This document shows positions 1,217-64,000 of a stretch of 64,000 bases of DNA, piece by piece (position 1 is the stretch's first letter; every line of letters begins with the position of its first letter). The translations under genes were made by a program, and so were the position numbers. The notes beneath the pieces were generated by a model. That model ran no database searches. It was not told the DNA's origin and saw nothing but the letters and a program-made list of their open reading frames with translations. This stretch comes from Guillardia theta CCMP2712 (Eukaryota > Protista > Cryptophyta). Where the stretch lies: NCBI RefSeq assembly GCF_000315625.1, contig NW_005434670.1, forward strand, positions 1,008,258 to 1,072,257, written 5' to 3'.

Positions 1217-2617
1217 TCACATCGAATCCACAGATCCCTGCCCTTCAGTCATTCTCTTATCTCCTCCTGTACTCCCAATGTCCCTCCCCTTCCGCCCCCT
1301 TTGCTCCTCTCCTCCCCTCCTCCAGTCTCCCGCCCCTTCCTTCATACCTGGAGGACGGGTGTGACGGACGCTGTGTCGCCGATTGCTCTTGCAAACTGAA
1401 GACGCGTGAGAAGCTGACGAGGGCAAGGAGAAGAAGAAAAACAAGGAGAGGAGGAGAAATGGAGCAAAGAACAGCCGATGATGTGGGTTGAGCATGAGAC
1501 AAGTGAGGGGGAGATGGCTAGAGGATCAGAAGAGGAAGCAACTTGATAGAAGAGAGAGAGTAAGCAAGAGATTGCAGTATAGGGAAAGGACAACGAGGAG
1601 AACCTGACGGCGTAGACGAGGAACATCTTCGTTGAGAATCCTAACAATGAGCGATCAGATCACCAGCAGCATATGAAGTGGAGTCGAGATGATGAATGTA
1701 TATCGGGGGGATGACACAGTGGGGAGCGGAGGATGGAGGGCTACCTGTTCAAGTACTCGTTGTCTCTTCTTCCAGCATGTCCAATCGCCCTTATCCCCAC
1801 CGTTCGCATCGCCAGCTGCAACAACATGAACATGACAAAGATTGCACTTTTTCGCGCTCAACGAGAACAACACTGGCTCACATCTCTACAACGCTATTCA
1901 CATTACAGACACTGCCTTCTCATTTTTAAACCTTTAACATGCATCTTGACCAACTCATCTCAACGCATGCAACTTGACATCACATCTGTTCAACAAACGA
2001 TCGCCTTACCTGCAGTCGGGGCATGACGCGTTGCCACAGTGAGTGCAAAAACTCGTCACCCTCAGCAATTTGCATTCTGTAGTTGTCCTCAAACAGCTGC
2101 AAGAGAGAGAATGTTAACAAAGCACAACCAGGAAGATGGAAAGGAGGAGACAAGTATTCTGAGCGACTTCAGTATGCCAAAGAGCGACTTCAATATGCTA
2201 ACTCTGTTCCTTGTGCTCCTTACTCTGCCTCCTCGTTCTCTCCCCACGTACCTTGGTCAAGTTGTGGTCTTCCGTGAGTTCTGCTGTCACCTTCTTGATC
2301 CGGGGAGCAGTAAACATGTAGAACATCAAACTGAACGTCTGCCCGCCGATAAAAACTGTTGAGAAGATTGAGATGACGTCATGAAGTCGGAGGAAGGGAG
2401 GCAGAGGAAGGGGATTGATGAGCCGGGGACGACAGGACAGGACAGGACAGGATGGGACGGGAAGTGAAGGGAGAGGAAATAGTTTGGTTTACCCGGCCAG
2501 TGCATGAAATCCCATCTTTGCCCGAAGCGTCTAATAAGGTCTCCTTTTCCCTTGTAGACGGCTGGAGCCAAAAATCAAGAAAAGGCTTCGTCGGGAATAG
2601 TACATCGAGCAACGGAT

Positions 2618-2676
<59 letters not shown>

Positions 2677-4414
2677 AAATTTGGTAGCAATGAGCAATCG
2701 AGTGTCGATTGCATGACATTGAGACATTCAAGACACAATGGCGCTGTCTCGTACAAAGACTCCATACCAGCAGCAACCCCGCAGCAGCAAGAGAGACAAG
2801 AGCAGTCTGAATGTGAACCGACCACCAAACGCGGTTCACCTGCTTTCTCACTGGAATGATATCAGCGGAGTTGTTCGGGAGGTGCGAAGGTGAGAAGAGG
2901 AGGGGAGAAAAGGGGGAGGAAGGAGGAGGAAGGGAGGAGGGAGGGAGGAGGGAGGAACATGAGAAGGGAGATTCAAGAATCTTATACAGGGGAAGCAGCG
3001 CAAGATGATACCTGCAGTGCAGACCCATGCGTACATCTGCAATACGCGGGTCGAGTCGTCAAGTCGTGATATCATATTGTCTACTCTTCGCTCTTGCGCG
3101 TTGTTGACCTACACGTTCTGTTGTTCAGCCTCTACATGTGAAAGGAAGCCAGTCACCTTGTTCACAACCTCTGACCGAGTCGAGTGCAGATCCAGTAGCG
3201 CTTCTTTCCCCAGGCCCTCCCCCTGTCCCGAACCTTATCTCTGCTCCTCCTACACTCCTCCTCCTTACCTGGTTGGGAGTAGGCACACACATGGTGTAGA
3301 TGGGCGGCAAATCTTTCCTCGGAATCACCTAACGTGCCTTTCAATCTTTCTGAAGCGAAGGAGCATCATCTTACCTTGCTCAAGTTCCAGCAAAGAGCTC
3401 CAAACGCGCGGGCAAAGTCATGCATCTTGTTGAACTGATCGCACTTGTTGAAGATAATGTTCAACTTGTGCTCCATCCCATTCAGGGCCTCCCAAAACGT
3501 GTCAGGCATGCAGATTCACAGTTTGAATTTCACCTTTGTCAGGCACTCGAGTGTCTCCCCAGTTGTTCCAGGCTTGTCAGGATCGAAGAAGAGAAGAATG
3601 ACGTCGGAGTGCTCAGCAAACCAGCGAGTCACCGCCATGAAGTTGTAACCACGATCGAACGTTCCCTCCGAGGAGTACTTGCTCTCCCTTCCCCTGCTGC
3701 TGGAAGACAACCTGAGCCGCTCAGAAGTCGACAGGTGGGCAGGAGCAGAGACGGCGGGGCAGTCGATCATTCCCGGACTATCCACCAAGATCACATTCTT
3801 GAGGCCAAGGTTCTTCCTGACTTTGAGCTGCACGTGCGAAATGAGAGCGTTTCCAAAGTTTCTCAGGGCCATGAAGCCAAGGTCTGGGTCCCCGACAAGC
3901 GCCGGCCCGTCCTGGTCAGTGTCCTCCATGCCCGAGGTGATGAGAGTGAAGCTGTCGTCAGTCGGAGCCACCCCGGACTTCTGGACCTCGGACCCTACAA
4001 GGAAGTTGATGAAGCTTGACTTTCCAGACGAGTGGTTCCCGAGCAGCAGAACCATCGGACGAGACGTGATGATCTCAGATTGTGGTAGAGGGCCCATCAT
4101 ACGCTCGTTGATTGGAAGAAGAATGCTCTGATAACACTCGTCGGCCTCCTGCTCCAGTGTCTTGATGATAGTTCCAGAAGCCGGCGACCTACGAAGAAAT
4201 CGGCAAGTCAGAAAGTCGGTGGGAGACATCCAACAATGTGGGATTGTGACACAATGATGGAAAAAGGCTGAGTCTAGATTTTGATACTTGAGGATGAACG
4301 AATACCGTCACAAGAAAACTAAGTTGATCACCTCAACATCGCCGAGAAGGTTCCGCTGGAGGAGTTCGACTTGCTGTCTGGTGTCTCCGTATTGTTCTTC
4401 GCCCGCCTGGCCAT
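1217..4414 (-). CDS. EHD/dynamin-superfamily P-loop GTPase with a putative transmembrane segment, multi-exon
   Basis: P-loop LLGNHSSGKSSFIN, G2 GVAPTDD, G3 LVDSPG, RGYNF, FFDPDKPG, then spliced NKCDQ, DLPPIYTM and RRVDNMISRLDDS. ATG at 4414 (MARRAKNN); C-terminal exons ILNEDVPRLRRQ...GQGSVDSM*. Confidence 0.8.
2618..2676. repeat. (GAT)n microsatellite, intronic
   Basis: About 19 perfect GAT units. Confidence 0.95.
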
Positions 4415-59756: not shown

Positions 59757-62691
59757 ATGTCGGATCCTATCTCACAGCTCGGGTCATGGTTTGGCCAAGA
59801 GAGAAATCAGAGCTTTGGAGAACTTCCGAGCAGGAGGAGCAGTGCACAGACAGTGGCGAAGGTGCCTGAGAAAGACAAGACCGAATGCTTCGGTGTCGGG
59901 CTAGCGTTCGAGATCGGGAGGGACAGCAGTCTGTTTGTGTCACAGCTGGACCCATCATGCTCTGCTGCTCGGTCAGGAGTGATCCAAGTGCATGACGAGA
60001 TCTTGAAGATCGATGGGGAGTTGGTCGAGAAGCAGTCCCTGAACCTTCTCAAGTCCAGGGTGCTGGGCAGGCAGGGCAGCTTCGTGAACATGACGTTTCG
60101 ACGCCTTACCGATCGAGGATTGTTCGTGTTCGAGGTTGAGCTGATGAGAGGGGCCGCAGAGTTCATCGAGATCGTCAGCCAGTGCAAGCTGATGACCAAG
60201 GAGAACAAGAAGCTGGTGGCTCAGATTCGAGAGTCCGAGCTGACGGCTGAGTCACACAGGGAGAACATGATGACGATGCTCAAGGATCTGCAGAAGTTCG
60301 AAGAGATTACAGCACAGTATCAAGCTCTTCAGAGGAGGGCGGAGGGGGAGAACGAGCGGCTGTCCAAGGAAGTGGCTCAGCTCAGGCAGCTCCTTGCGGA
60401 TCGAGGGGAGCAAGGCGACCAGGTGTGTCCGGCAGGAGGAGGATTGCTGGTTGACGATCTGGCCAGGACTTGAAACAGCGCGAGGAAGTAGAAGCTCGTC
60501 TGCTAGCGGAGGTCCCTGCATGTTCCTCCGACGGATGTGACTGACGATGAAGCAGAGGAAGGAGTTGGAGTTGTTCTATCAAGGAAGAGAAGAGGAGCTC
60601 AAAAGAGAGGTACTCCAAGTCTTCTCTTCATGGCCATCCTGCTGGACAGCCGTGACCTGTGTTTCAGGTTCAAAGCCTCCAGGCCGTCATCAGAGACATG
60701 CAGGCAGCAAGGGAGAGGAGTCAGCAGGAGCAGCAGCAGCTTCTGCAGCACGAGCAGGAGCATCGAGGGCTCACCGCGGAGCTCGAAGAGCTGAGAACTG
60801 CGAATAATAATTTGACCGCTAGAGTTGTCAAGATGAATGAGGAGATGACGTCCAAGAGGCTGCAGGGGGCAGCTCGGGAAGAGCACATGCTGGATCAGAT
60901 CAGGCAGGCGGAGCGAGAGAGCTCGTCGTTGAGGAAAGAGATCGAAGGAGTGAAAACTCAGCTGGAGTTGACGAGGTTGGAGCTGAAGGAGAAGGAGTTG
61001 GAGGTAGCGAGGATGAACAGCGGGAGCCAGGAGGAGATGAAGACGTTGGCCGCCAAGCATGACAAGTCGCTGTCCAAGATCGTCAAGTTGGAGGAGGAGA
61101 TCTGGAGCAAGAAGTCGGAGCTGCAGGCGTTCGAGCAGAGGATAAGGCTTCTGACGGAGAAGACGGAGACCGTCGGATCGGAGAGGGACGAATGGAGGAG
61201 AAGGTTTACCAATATGGAGGAGAAGAACAAACACCTCATGATCGAGCTAGAAGCGACCAAGTCAGAGGCCAAGAGGACGGTCGCGGAGGTCGTCAAGGAA
61301 AAAGACATTCACATCTCCAGCCTCGAAGAGGAGGTGGAAACTCTGCGAGCAGACAAGGACAGGATCAAGGTGCTCAGCAGCCGCACCCGCCAGGAGCTCT
61401 TCCAGCAGCGCGAGAGGACTGAGAGCCTGGAGGAGGAGGTGCGGCGGCTAGGCGATCTGATGCAGGAGGAGCAGGAAGGGAAGAAGAAGCTCTCGCAAGA
61501 GATCTCCCTCCTCGTCCGCCAACTCGACGAGCTCCGCGATCGCTCGTCCTCCATGATGGTGGATGAGAGTCGCTCGCAGCTGGCTGCGATGCAAGAGGAG
61601 CTGGCGAGAGAGCGACAGTCGCGTCAGGAGGCGGAGGAGAGGCTCCTCACTGCTCTCCTGGAACGAGAGGAGGTTGTTGAGAGCAAGGATCAGGTCAAGG
61701 TGGAGCTGACAAGCAACAAGCAGCTGGTCGAGGCGCTTCACGGGGTGGGAGAGCTCCAGGTGAAGCTCTCAGAGGACATCGCCATCTTCCTTGATAGCCT
61801 CGACCTCGCCCATCAGCCCTCCTGGTCGCCACTGGAGGAGGAGCAGAAGAAGCCCTCCTGGTCCCTGTGGAGCTCGGATCACTCCGCATCTGTGCTTGAA
61901 CTGCTGGGCAAGCAGGAGGCAAGCATGCTCGTGCTCTCCAGCAGCCTCGGACAAGCTGACTCGTCCTGCGAACGACTCGCCCAGCTCACTCGCCAGCTGC
62001 ACGAGTCCTTCGAGTCTCAGGGAAGCCTGAGATCCACCGCGAGAGTGAGGCAGGAAGAGGAGACGGCGGGGGAGGAGAGGGGAGGCGAGGAGCCGTCAAG
62101 TAGTCCCATGGACAGCTTGAACCATGTTGGGGAGGGAGGAGAGGAGAATGGAACGGATGTGGGCGGGGTGGCGGTGGAGGAATCGAGCGGCGCGCGTGAC
62201 AGTCAAGTGGGTCGCTTCTTAGTTAACGGCTTCAAGGTGAAGGAGGACGATCAGTTGAAGCCTGTTGTGGAGATCCTCCGCTCCGTACCGAAGCGAGGAT
62301 GCCTGTGGAAAGGAGTGCGAAAGAGTTCCAAGCTGAATTTCAGCGAAGGAGAGTCAAATTGCGTGTATCTGCTACCAGAGCAGGAAGAAGATGAAGGAAC
62401 TTGTGCTCCCGTCAGCAGCTGGCGGACTTCCCTCGATGTAGAGGTAACGAACTTGATTCTTACGGCAGTTTTCCCTTCTCTCACTCCCCGCTCCCTTCCC
62501 TCTGCTTCTCACTATCACCCCCCCTCCTCACCTCTGCGCTTGCTCGAGTACTGGCGCCTGCCTTGTCCTTGATTTCTACTGCCCATGAATACTTGAGGCA
62601 GGAAGAGCTGGAAGTGGCCGAGGAGGAGCTTGACCAGCTTGTCCGAGAAAACACTCGCGTGAATGCAGGCTCTTCCTACAGCTTCTGCTGA
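59757..62691 (+). CDS. PDZ domain + long coiled-coil protein, multi-exon (3' end approximate)
   Basis: GVGLAF..LFVSQLDPSCSAARSGVIQVHDEILKIDG..VLGRQGSFVNMTFRR (PDZ) followed by more than 400 aa of heptad-rich sequence. Confidence 0.8.
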
Positions 62692-62780
62692 GTCTTTTGC
62701 GCCTCCTCCATGTTTGTCCTACCGGCATACTAACAAGAAAGAATAGTCTATTAACAATCTCTACTTCTCAACACTGCTTC

Positions 62781-64000
62781 TCACTGTACAACTGTGTTGC
62801 GAAACTGTACATAAGACTTGTGCAGCCCCGACTTGAGGCTGTACATGTCGTGCAAGATCACCTTGACAGCCGCGCGTTAGAGGAGCAGACGGGCGAGAAA
62901 AAGACAAGGAAGAAACAAGTAGCCACGACGATCAGCGAGCCAGACGGCAGGAGCAGGACGGGGGAGACAGCTTACCTGCATCTCACAGATATGACGATGG
63001 AGACCTTCGGTTGTCTCCCACTCGCTCAGAGGAACCAGCATGCAGCTGTTCATGATCGAGCTCTTGATGTACCCCACCTGCTCAACCTCAGATCGTAGGA
63101 CAGCTCAGGCGACAATGTCCTACCTCCACACAAACGCACACATCGCGATACCCGACCGTCTCATGCTTGTTGTATGCGGGATCATACCTGCGGTGAAGAT
63201 GAGGAGGAGAGGAGAGGAGGTGCGTGTCGTCAGCTCACCTGTTCTTGATGCATGTGATGCTCATGAACTTCTTGCTCAGCTCCACTCCCTCTCCCTCCGA
63301 CTCCTGCGGACACGAGACTCTCAGACGACTGTCGGTCGGCCCCCAAGACCAGCACAAGCTCACCTCAGCCCCATCAGGCTGCACTTTCCCCCTGTGCGGG
63401 AACCGCTTCTCGTACCCGAACGCAACCTCCGACGTCCTCATCAGATGCTCCACCCACCGCGTCAGCTCCGTCAGGTCCTTCACCACAATGCTGCACCGCA
63501 CGAGGTCCGTGAGCTTGGAGCAGTCTCGCTCGTAGGACCGCACGACTTTCTGCAGAGCGCGCGAGCATGTCTTGATGTTTCCCTGCTTCACCACTCCGTG
63601 CGCGTTCCACCGAGCCACGAAGTCCTGGAAAGGACCGCTCAGCTGCTGCGCTTCTTTGTACAAGAGCTCGATGTCGTTAGATCTTTGCCCCATCTTGAGA
63701 CGTTTGGAGATGCGGGGTTTGTACAGACCCATCAGGATCATCGCCTTCCGACCGAGGCCTCGTCGTTCTGTCTGCCGCGCAACGAGTAGGAGGGAGTTGA
63801 CTTGTCTGGTGAGCTGATACAAACGTTGTAGCATGTCGGCTTCGTTGCGTCTCATCCTGTTCCACGCCTCGCTGAACGCATTTGATTTTTCCTCCAGCTC
63901 CTCGTAGATCGCACGAAGCTTCAAGTAATACATCACAGGCATGGAAATGGCAAGACCAAGCAACACGGTGCCGTACACGTAGAACAAGTAAATGGCCCAC
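62781..64000 (-). CDS. Transmembrane protein with C-terminal RelA/SpoT synthetase-like nucleotidyltransferase domain (5' end outside window)
   Basis: TM WAIYLFYVYGTVLLGLAISMPVMYYL; spliced domain IKTCSRALQKVVRSY..LTDLVRCSIV..IKNR/YDP..VGYRDVCVCVE/..HICEMQ/VILHDMYSLKSGLHKSYVQFRN*. Confidence 0.7.

Follow-up and report, generated by a model that had tools for sequence, protein, structure and literature searches.

Alarmone synthetases of the RelA/SpoT homologue (RSH) type are usually treated as bacterial and plastid enzymes, and to our knowledge none is known to work at a eukaryotic membrane. A minus-strand gene at the end of the 64,000-nucleotide stretch of DNA analysed here (positions 1,008,258 to 1,072,257 of contig NW_005434670.1 of the cryptophyte Guillardia theta CCMP2712; hereafter the window) raises the question of whether such an enzyme exists, as an earlier note made from the sequence had proposed. 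We find that positions 62781-64000 are the 3' end of an expressed and spliced nuclear gene, whose protein has about 905 residues, and structural modelling shows that the C-terminal 221 residues have a divergent RelA/SpoT-type synthetase fold, that is, a DNA polymerase beta (pol-beta)-like nucleotidyltransferase (NTase) fold. The gene product is a membrane-anchored RSH-like protein and most likely an active pyrophosphokinase, which would give an alarmone-type product at the membrane.

The gene model, derived from the sequence, places five exons between 64000 and 62781 of the minus strand, interrupted by four introns that all have GT..AG ends. It was compared over 62300-64000 with public RNA runs, three of which gave contigs (X1, X3 and X4) and one raw reads (X21). 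Junction skips of 60, 51, 46 and 114 nucleotides (nt) were recovered from RNA (CT..AC on the plus strand), the first three in contigs of X1, X3 and X4 and the 114-nt one in X1 and X4 only, and the raw reads of X21 contain 4/4 junctions. The joining of the exons at canonical sites, for which the earlier note had asked for RNA evidence, is confirmed at all four junctions by contigs and raw reads alike. The X3 contig has its window part at 2429-3352 of 3352 nt, and therefore some 2.4 kb of mRNA lie upstream, beyond the window end.

All features of the gene are on the minus strand and are given here in ascending coordinates. Exon A (63364-64000) runs past the window end, is read in the frame from 63999 and encodes the last transmembrane (TM) helix, a linker and the N-terminal half of the enzyme domain; contigs of X1 and X3 span 63363-64000 with 0 differences. 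Intron 1 (63304-63363, 60 nt) is in frame and has no stop codon, and its reading as coding read-through was rejected because contigs of X1, X3 and X4 as well as one raw read splice it out. Exon B (63239-63303) encodes the tail of an acidic glycine-rich insertion and a beta strand, and is followed by intron 2 (63188-63238, 51 nt; three contigs and five raw reads), exon C (63124-63187), intron 3 (63078-63123, 46 nt; three contigs and 11 raw reads), exon D (62976-63077), whose 3' end codes for H-I-C-E-M-Q, intron 4 (62862-62975, 114 nt; X1 and X4 contigs and 15 raw reads) and exon E (62781-62861), which encodes the C-terminal helix with H-K-S-Y-V-Q-F-R-N and ends in the stop codon TGA at 62781-62783. 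The first 46 nt of the 3' untranslated region (UTR; 62735-62780) are common to the transcript of a paralogue (L001), as found by blastn of the window mRNA; the identity with L001 ends at 62735, where the X3 and X4 contigs also have loose ends. One high-depth X3 contig begins inside intron 4, at 62920, and continues unspliced into exon D, which suggests that intron 4 is partly retained or that an alternative 3' end is used.

The spliced product inside the window has 315 residues. Residues 1-25 (63925-63999) form the last TM helix, with a Kyte-Doolittle hydropathy of about 1.7 over 19 residues, residues 25-94 (63718-63927) a charged linker of about 70 residues, probably helical, between membrane and domain, and residues 95-315 (62784-63717) the RelA/SpoT-synthetase-like domain, which has 221 residues after splicing and reaches the C-terminus. 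All five motifs that the earlier note had listed were located in the order it gave, from 63576 down to 62811 and downstream of the hydrophobic helix. Of these, I-K-T-C-S-R-A-L-Q-K (63547-63576) contains a K-x3-R-x3-K triad that aligns with RvKs..S...K in RelP and PIKSRERAMQK in Tas1, a toxin from Pseudomonas aeruginosa that synthesises (p)ppApp. The aspartate (63505-63507) of T-D-L-V-R (63496-63510) aligns with that of 'HDIAGVR' in RelP, D-L-V-R being placed on hDIaGvR by profile hidden Markov model (HMM) alignments onto 6fgk, 2be3, 6fgj and 6ox6. In exon C, G-Y-R-D (63142-63153) aligns with G-Y-R-S of RelP and RelQ; the glutamate (62982-62984) of E-M-Q (62976-62984) aligns with that of 'aEIQIRT' in the same enzymes, E-x-Q falling on E-I-Q; and the H-x-x-Y of H-K-S-Y (62811-62822) falls on H-K-x-Y, where 'GHKYYEDWR' of Tas1 matches the family consensus. 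Magnesium binding by the aspartate and catalysis by the glutamate are established roles in RSH synthetases.

Compared with the canonical R-x-K-x3-S-x3-K of RSH enzymes, both lysines (K49 and K57) are kept, the serine position is taken by an arginine (R53) and the first arginine is absent; compared with D-x-x-G-x-R, the arginine stands at +3 from the aspartate (D-L-V-R) rather than at +5. Tas1 likewise lacks the first arginine of R-x-K and has its arginine at +3 (D-L-A-R).

Relatives of the domain were sought among 1.84 billion representative sequences, where HMMER found 130 at E <=0.001. Those with names are hypothetical proteins of G. theta CCMP2712 and transcripts of Hanusia phi, and one of them carries the UniRef label 'RelA/SpoT domain-containing protein'. 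A Pfam search with single exons and with a stop-free stretch of 253 residues gave noise only, because the query was fragmented, and a word-index protein search with exon A, a method that sees only proteins of similar length, gave no match. A word search started from the best HMMER match led to P0131, a protein of 900 residues from a JGI transcript contig; the open reading frame of the paralogue transcript L001 has 905. Iterated searches put the domain at 170-220 residues, and in almost every member only 0-3 residues follow it.

An alignment of 64 domain sequences, at 25-45% identity, has eight invariant columns (K49, R53, K57, Y62, D71, R74, R154 and E193) and six more that are kept in at least 90% of the sequences (G152, H190, Q195, H209, Y212 and R216). 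A profile of this alignment matched Tas1 (6ox6) at 1.9e-11, RelP/YwaC (6fgk) at 1.2e-7, 2be3 at 6.7e-5 and RelP of Staphylococcus aureus at 2.5e-4 (6fgj) and 0.0024. The family profile was needed because a search of the Protein Data Bank (PDB) with the single sequence gave Tas1 alone, weakly (E 0.14-0.16). The motif set listed in the earlier note is thus not a product of chance, its columns being invariant or nearly so and the profile matching RelA/SpoT synthetases. Derived motifs common to the family and Tas1 are P-x-K-x3-R-A-x-Q-K, D-L-x-R and G-H-x-Y-x-x-x-R. In a quick maximum-likelihood tree, P0131, standing in for the window protein, groups with two G. theta proteins (Shimodaira-Hasegawa approximate likelihood ratio test, SH-aLRT, 99), and the domains of proteins with TIR-like, SAM and six-TM parts lie inside one clade of 22 rows (SH-aLRT 95), with tandem proteins placed elsewhere.

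The fold was assessed on an AlphaFold (AF2) model of the domain with a predicted local distance difference test score (pLDDT) of 89.8, the acidic glycine-rich insertion lying below the rest at 62-72. The best 50 Foldseek matches in the PDB were RSH enzymes in 50/50 cases. With VIA-align, the model superposed on RelQ with Z 14.5 and a root-mean-square deviation (rmsd) of 2.5 A over 145 residues, followed by RelP (13.3), an exported synthetase (11.1), CapRel (10.4-10.7), Tas1 (10.4, at 22% identity) and long RSHs (8-11); the first 26 rows were all RelA/SpoT synthetases, and terminal deoxynucleotidyltransferase (TdT), Pol lambda and other pol-beta NTases reached Z <=7.8. The fold proposed from the motifs is therefore borne out by Foldseek, by the RelQ superposition and by the profile matches to Tas1, RelP and RelQ.

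The upstream part of the protein was read on P0131/L001, the paralogue's transcript, used as a proxy for the window gene. P0131 and the window product are identical in 310/315 residues, the five substitutions falling within nine positions of the last membrane helix (residues 586-609 of P0131). By hydropathy, P0131 has clear helices at about 422-442, 468-490, 500-521 and 586-609 and weaker, aromatic-rich ones at 536-556 and 561-581; its relatives P0132 and P0010 show six. In P0131, a Pfam search at E 10 gave no match to HD, TGS, ACT or EF-hand domains, and the N-terminus of the protein (M-E-E-H), judged by eye, has no hydrophobic signal or obvious transit peptide. On this proxy, the layout runs from a degenerate TIR-like region through a SAM domain, about six TM helices and the linker to the RSH-like synthetase. 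The domain is thus tethered to the membrane through a TM helix and helical linker that occupy the place of an HD domain, as had been predicted; the anchor itself stands, and what was taken for a single TM helix is the last of about six. Across the family, the last helix is commonly some 70-110 residues from the domain, with few outliers up to about 280. Some paralogues carry two copies of the TM block plus domain, each domain behind its own TM block, an arrangement that fits a dimeric catalytic unit.

The N-terminal 420 residues of P0131 are common to some twenty proteins of the set. In an alignment of 18 N-terminal sequences, D-V-F-I-S-Y-R and L-M-E-F or L-L-E-Y occur in two distant members, P0104 and P0117, and only these exceed the Pfam cut-off for TIR_2 (34.2 and 28.6 bits); the column of the TIR glutamate holds histidine in the window-type protein and several cryptophyte relatives. 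A block of the form W-L-R-x-x-G-L ... F-A ... D-S-L resembles SAM domains, SAM_1/SAM_2 being found below the Pfam cut-off in six relatives, and the profile matches Eph/SHIP2 SAM at E 0.003. Foldseek gave no match for the whole N-terminal model of 381 residues (pLDDT 69); VIA-align against all representative chains found SAM and TIR-like folds. The model superposed on tankyrase SAM with Z 6.8 and rmsd 2.1 A over 61 of 63 residues, many other SAM domains coming next, and more weakly on the TIR domains of RPS4, RPP1 and SARM1 (Z 5.1-6.3, RPS4 6.3).

Two relatives differ in architecture. P0104 has an F5/8 type C (discoidin) domain at residues 424-494, by its first predicted helix (starting at 391), and two more relatives have this domain, which in P0104 could be an extracellular ligand-binding loop. 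The metagenomic P0015 (L002 2743-7074; 1443 residues) combines a protein kinase, a SAM-like region, TM helices and a C-terminal RSH-like domain with a DZIP3-like HEPN match below the Pfam cut-off, in a layout that resembles conflict systems. The gene context of P0015 and of another metagenomic relative, P0014, was uninformative.

Selection was estimated against P0001, a homologue with 77% identity, after removal of its retained 46-nt intron, and at a synonymous divergence (dS) of about 1 or more. The source contig of P0001 retains the homologue of intron 3, which is why the database protein ends prematurely. Ratios of nonsynonymous to synonymous substitution (dN/dS) were 0.09 for the synthetase-like domain (0.04 for its last 86 residues), 0.06 for the N-terminus, 0.11 for the membrane block and 0.22 for the linker, so that, by these ratios, every region is under purifying selection. 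Between the window gene and L001/P0131, the part that codes for linker and enzyme (about 890 nt) shows only five changes, all of them silent, whereas in the last TM helix the window at 63940-64000 differs from L001 2424-2482 by five amino-acid changes and a compensated pair of 1-nt indels within nine codons. Judging from the alignment, these changes seem to mark the border of a gene-conversion or duplication tract, or else to form a hyperdivergent patch. Reads of the paralogue appear as 'variants' at 62811, 62820 and 63754.

What, then, does the protein do? From its sequence, the domain is most likely an active pyrophosphokinase, because it keeps the residues that align with the magnesium-binding aspartate, the catalytic glutamate, the G-Y loop and the basic triad serving the ATP phosphates. 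The invariance of K49, R53, K57, D71, R74, R154 and E193 over 64 sequences, together with the low dN/dS of the domain, speaks for activity. The enzyme domain should face the cytosol, because the number of helices is even, TIR and SAM are cytoplasmic domain types and no signal sequence is apparent by eye. A location outside the plastid, as the earlier note had suggested, would fit the last two of these points. The domain would take the beta,gamma-pyrophosphate from ATP and transfer it to the 3'-OH of a purine nucleotide, giving a (p)ppApp- or (p)ppGpp-type nucleotide at the membrane; the membrane module, together with oligomerisation via SAM and linker, would control the output. We postulate that this product would either be a second messenger or, as with Tas1, drain ATP for defence or death. 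The conserved linker fits the messenger role; the likeness to Tas1, the TIR/SAM context, the kinase and HEPN parts of P0015 and the tetratricopeptide (TPR) or ankyrin repeats of ESM Atlas neighbours fit an ATP-draining defence role.

Several points weigh against this view of the protein. The first arginine of R-x-K and the G-x-R after the aspartate are altered, and the Q-I-R-T that follows the catalytic glutamate has become Q-V-I-L; with these changes from canonical RSH enzymes, substrate or chemistry could differ. Acceptors differ within the clade of Tas1, RelV and exported synthetases (PMC12691689), and for this reason the product cannot be read from the sequence; the pyrophosphokinase role of the family is one that we infer from sequence and fold. 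The N-terminal architecture is that of the paralogue transcript and not of the window gene's own exons, which lie upstream beyond the window; the topology comes from simple hydropathy, with TM4 and TM5 weak; and the match to TIR domains is modest (Z 6.3, among GTPase-like folds), with the catalytic glutamate replaced by histidine. Finally, the earlier note had proposed comparison with the Pfam family PF04607 (RelA_SpoT) and with RelQ/RelP structures, and the two gave different answers. The structures agree, as described above, whereas PF04607 does not match the protein (P0131 as proxy) even at E 10. The same model weakly matches 19/64 of the domain sequences (best 2e-4) and 5/40 full-length relatives at E <=0.001 (best 5.2e-8); it is too narrow for this RSH branch, and since it misses the protein and touches some of its relatives, we regard the family as a divergent branch of the RSH superfamily.

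A broader proposal, which we put forward tentatively and consider somewhat less likely than its opposite, is that cryptophytes, together with other protists known from transcriptomes and metagenomes alone, have a cytosolic, membrane-based alarmone system that serves as a messenger pathway or as a SARM1/Tas1-like ATP-draining immune or death effector. In such a system, a multi-pass or receptor-like family, to which the TIR-like/SAM/6TM protein described here would belong, would make (p)ppApp or a related 3'-pyrophosphorylated nucleotide upon a membrane or oligomerisation signal. What the data describe is a conserved, expressed family under purifying selection, in which Tas1-like domains are joined to membrane modules, here with TIR-like and SAM parts. 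With such a family, the eukaryotic use of 3'-pyrophosphorylated nucleotides as cytosolic messengers or suicide effectors would become testable, and enzymes of bacterial conflict systems would be linked to eukaryotic receptor architecture.

Some long RSH proteins carry degenerate synthetase domains, and the domain might accordingly be a catalytically dead scaffold or a nucleotide-binding sensor that retains the RSH fold. The motif departures (no R of R-x-K, D-L-V-R for D-x-x-G-x-R, Q-V-I-L for Q-I-R-T) point in this direction, as does the TIR-like domain of the same protein, already without its catalytic glutamate. Nevertheless, no residue aligned with the aspartate, the glutamate or the basic triad varies among the 64 sequences, which are at 25-45% identity; Tas1, an active toxin, shows the same departures in the aligned N-terminal segment (no first arginine, D-L-A-R), and dN/dS is 0.04-0.09. 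We therefore consider loss of activity unlikely.

It is also improbable that the protein is a membrane-triggered defence effector that stops translation. CapRel (Z 10.4-10.7) and FaRel2 (Z 7.5) do superpose on the model, TIR and SAM here and kinase and HEPN in P0015 are typical modules of conflict systems, and ESM Atlas neighbours have TPR or ankyrin repeats; however, the nucleotide-making small alarmone synthetase (SAS) enzymes score higher (Z 12-14.5), and the profile that finds Tas1, RelP and RelQ finds no CapRel or FaRel2 chain at E <=10. A conventional plastid-targeted RSH (HD plus synthetase) with its upstream exons outside the window, which would suit a photosynthetic cryptophyte given that the RSHs known in algae are plastid enzymes (PMC10107265, PMC3153485), is highly improbable and contradicted by the data, because the near-identical full-length transcript of the paralogue lacks HD, TGS, ACT and EF-hand domains and encodes TIR-like, SAM and about six TM segments, its M-E-E-H N-terminus shows by eye no hydrophobic signal sequence, and the domain is closer to Tas1 and the SAS enzymes than to the long RSHs (Z 8-11).

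The gene is converged upon by a plus-strand neighbour (60659-62691) that encodes a long coiled-coil protein. The last intron of this neighbour (GT at 62444) has two acceptors 4 nt apart; X1 and X3 start the following exon at 62602, X4 at 62606, and the two forms would be in different frames. The 3' UTR of the neighbour and the 3' end of the synthetase-like gene overlap, and for this reason one X1 contig contains spliced introns of both strands.

No description of this domain family was found in the open-access literature. The eukaryotic RSHs listed by Atkinson et al. in 2011 (PMC3153485) comprise Mesh1, the plastid RSHs and a few unplaced, divergent synthetase-only 'divRel' proteins; the word root 'eukaryot' is absent from the main text of Jimmy et al. 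2020 and of the 2025 exported-synthetase paper; and, according to a 2022 review (PMC10107265), there has never been a report of (p)ppApp from plants or algae. The divRel[S] proteins, found in Dictyostelium, three ascomycetes (including Aspergillus and Gibberella) and two diatoms (PMC3153485), are, by their published description, eukaryotic, synthetase-only and too divergent for a bacterial subgroup, like the protein described here; the paper that defined them predates the cryptophyte genome and does not contain the word 'transmembrane'. The plastid RSH1-4 enzymes share the synthetase fold superfamily and are likewise nuclear-encoded in a photosynthetic eukaryote. They differ in having HD before the synthetase, TGS/ACT or EF-hand domains and plastid targeting, where the present protein has TIR-like, SAM and TM parts instead.

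In architecture, an analogy is offered by membrane-bound class III adenylyl and guanylyl cyclases (6TM-catalytic or 6TM-C1-6TM-C2), in which a six-helix block is likewise followed by a helical linker whose length is conserved and by a domain that converts nucleotides in the cytosol, and in which, as in some paralogues here, the unit is repeated twice; catalytic fold and chemistry are unrelated, so that this is an analogy only. SARM1, an NADase of the form ARM-SAM-SAM-TIR, also brings modules of the SAM and TIR type together with an enzyme that consumes a nucleotide, and our N-terminal model superposes on it with Z 5.8 in the SAM region and 5.1 in the TIR-like region. In the present protein, however, the order is reversed, with the TIR-like region first, there is no ARM domain, and the two features of a TIR NADase, the TIR fold and a catalytic glutamate in the alpha-C helix, are respectively modest and replaced by histidine, while SARM1 has neither the membrane module nor an RSH output.

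In fold, the best structural matches are RelQ/SAS1 and RelP/SAS2 of Firmicutes (5ded, 6fgk and 6ewz; Z 12-14.5, rmsd 2.5-3.4 A, 145-153 residues), with which all catalytic motifs of the domain align. They differ in being soluble, in forming homotetramers (about 200-230 residues) and in making (p)ppGpp/pGpp; their identity to the domain is only 13-17%, and their canonical R-x-K, D-x-x-G-x-R and E-I-Q-I-R-T are altered in it.

By sequence, the nearest characterised relative of the domain is Tas1/Apk1 (6ox6), a (p)ppApp synthetase toxin delivered by the type VI secretion system of P. aeruginosa, which gave the best profile match (1.9e-11) and the highest identity among the structural matches (22%, Z 10.4), and which shares P-x-K-x3-R-A-x-Q-K, D-L-x-R and G-H-x-Y-Y/V-x-x-R with the protein described here, the middle of the domain being left unaligned by HMMER. 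Tas1 itself is soluble and bacterial, a toxin domain joined to a PAAR module for its delivery and accompanied by an immunity protein; Pfam found no delivery module of Tas1-type toxins (PAAR, LXG or signal peptide) in P0131. The protein of G. theta, in contrast, is eukaryotic, spliced, membrane-integral, fused to TIR-like and SAM parts and enlarged by two insertions of about 30 and 24 residues. What is new here is the setting, a synthetase domain of the known RSH type within the architecture of a eukaryotic membrane protein.

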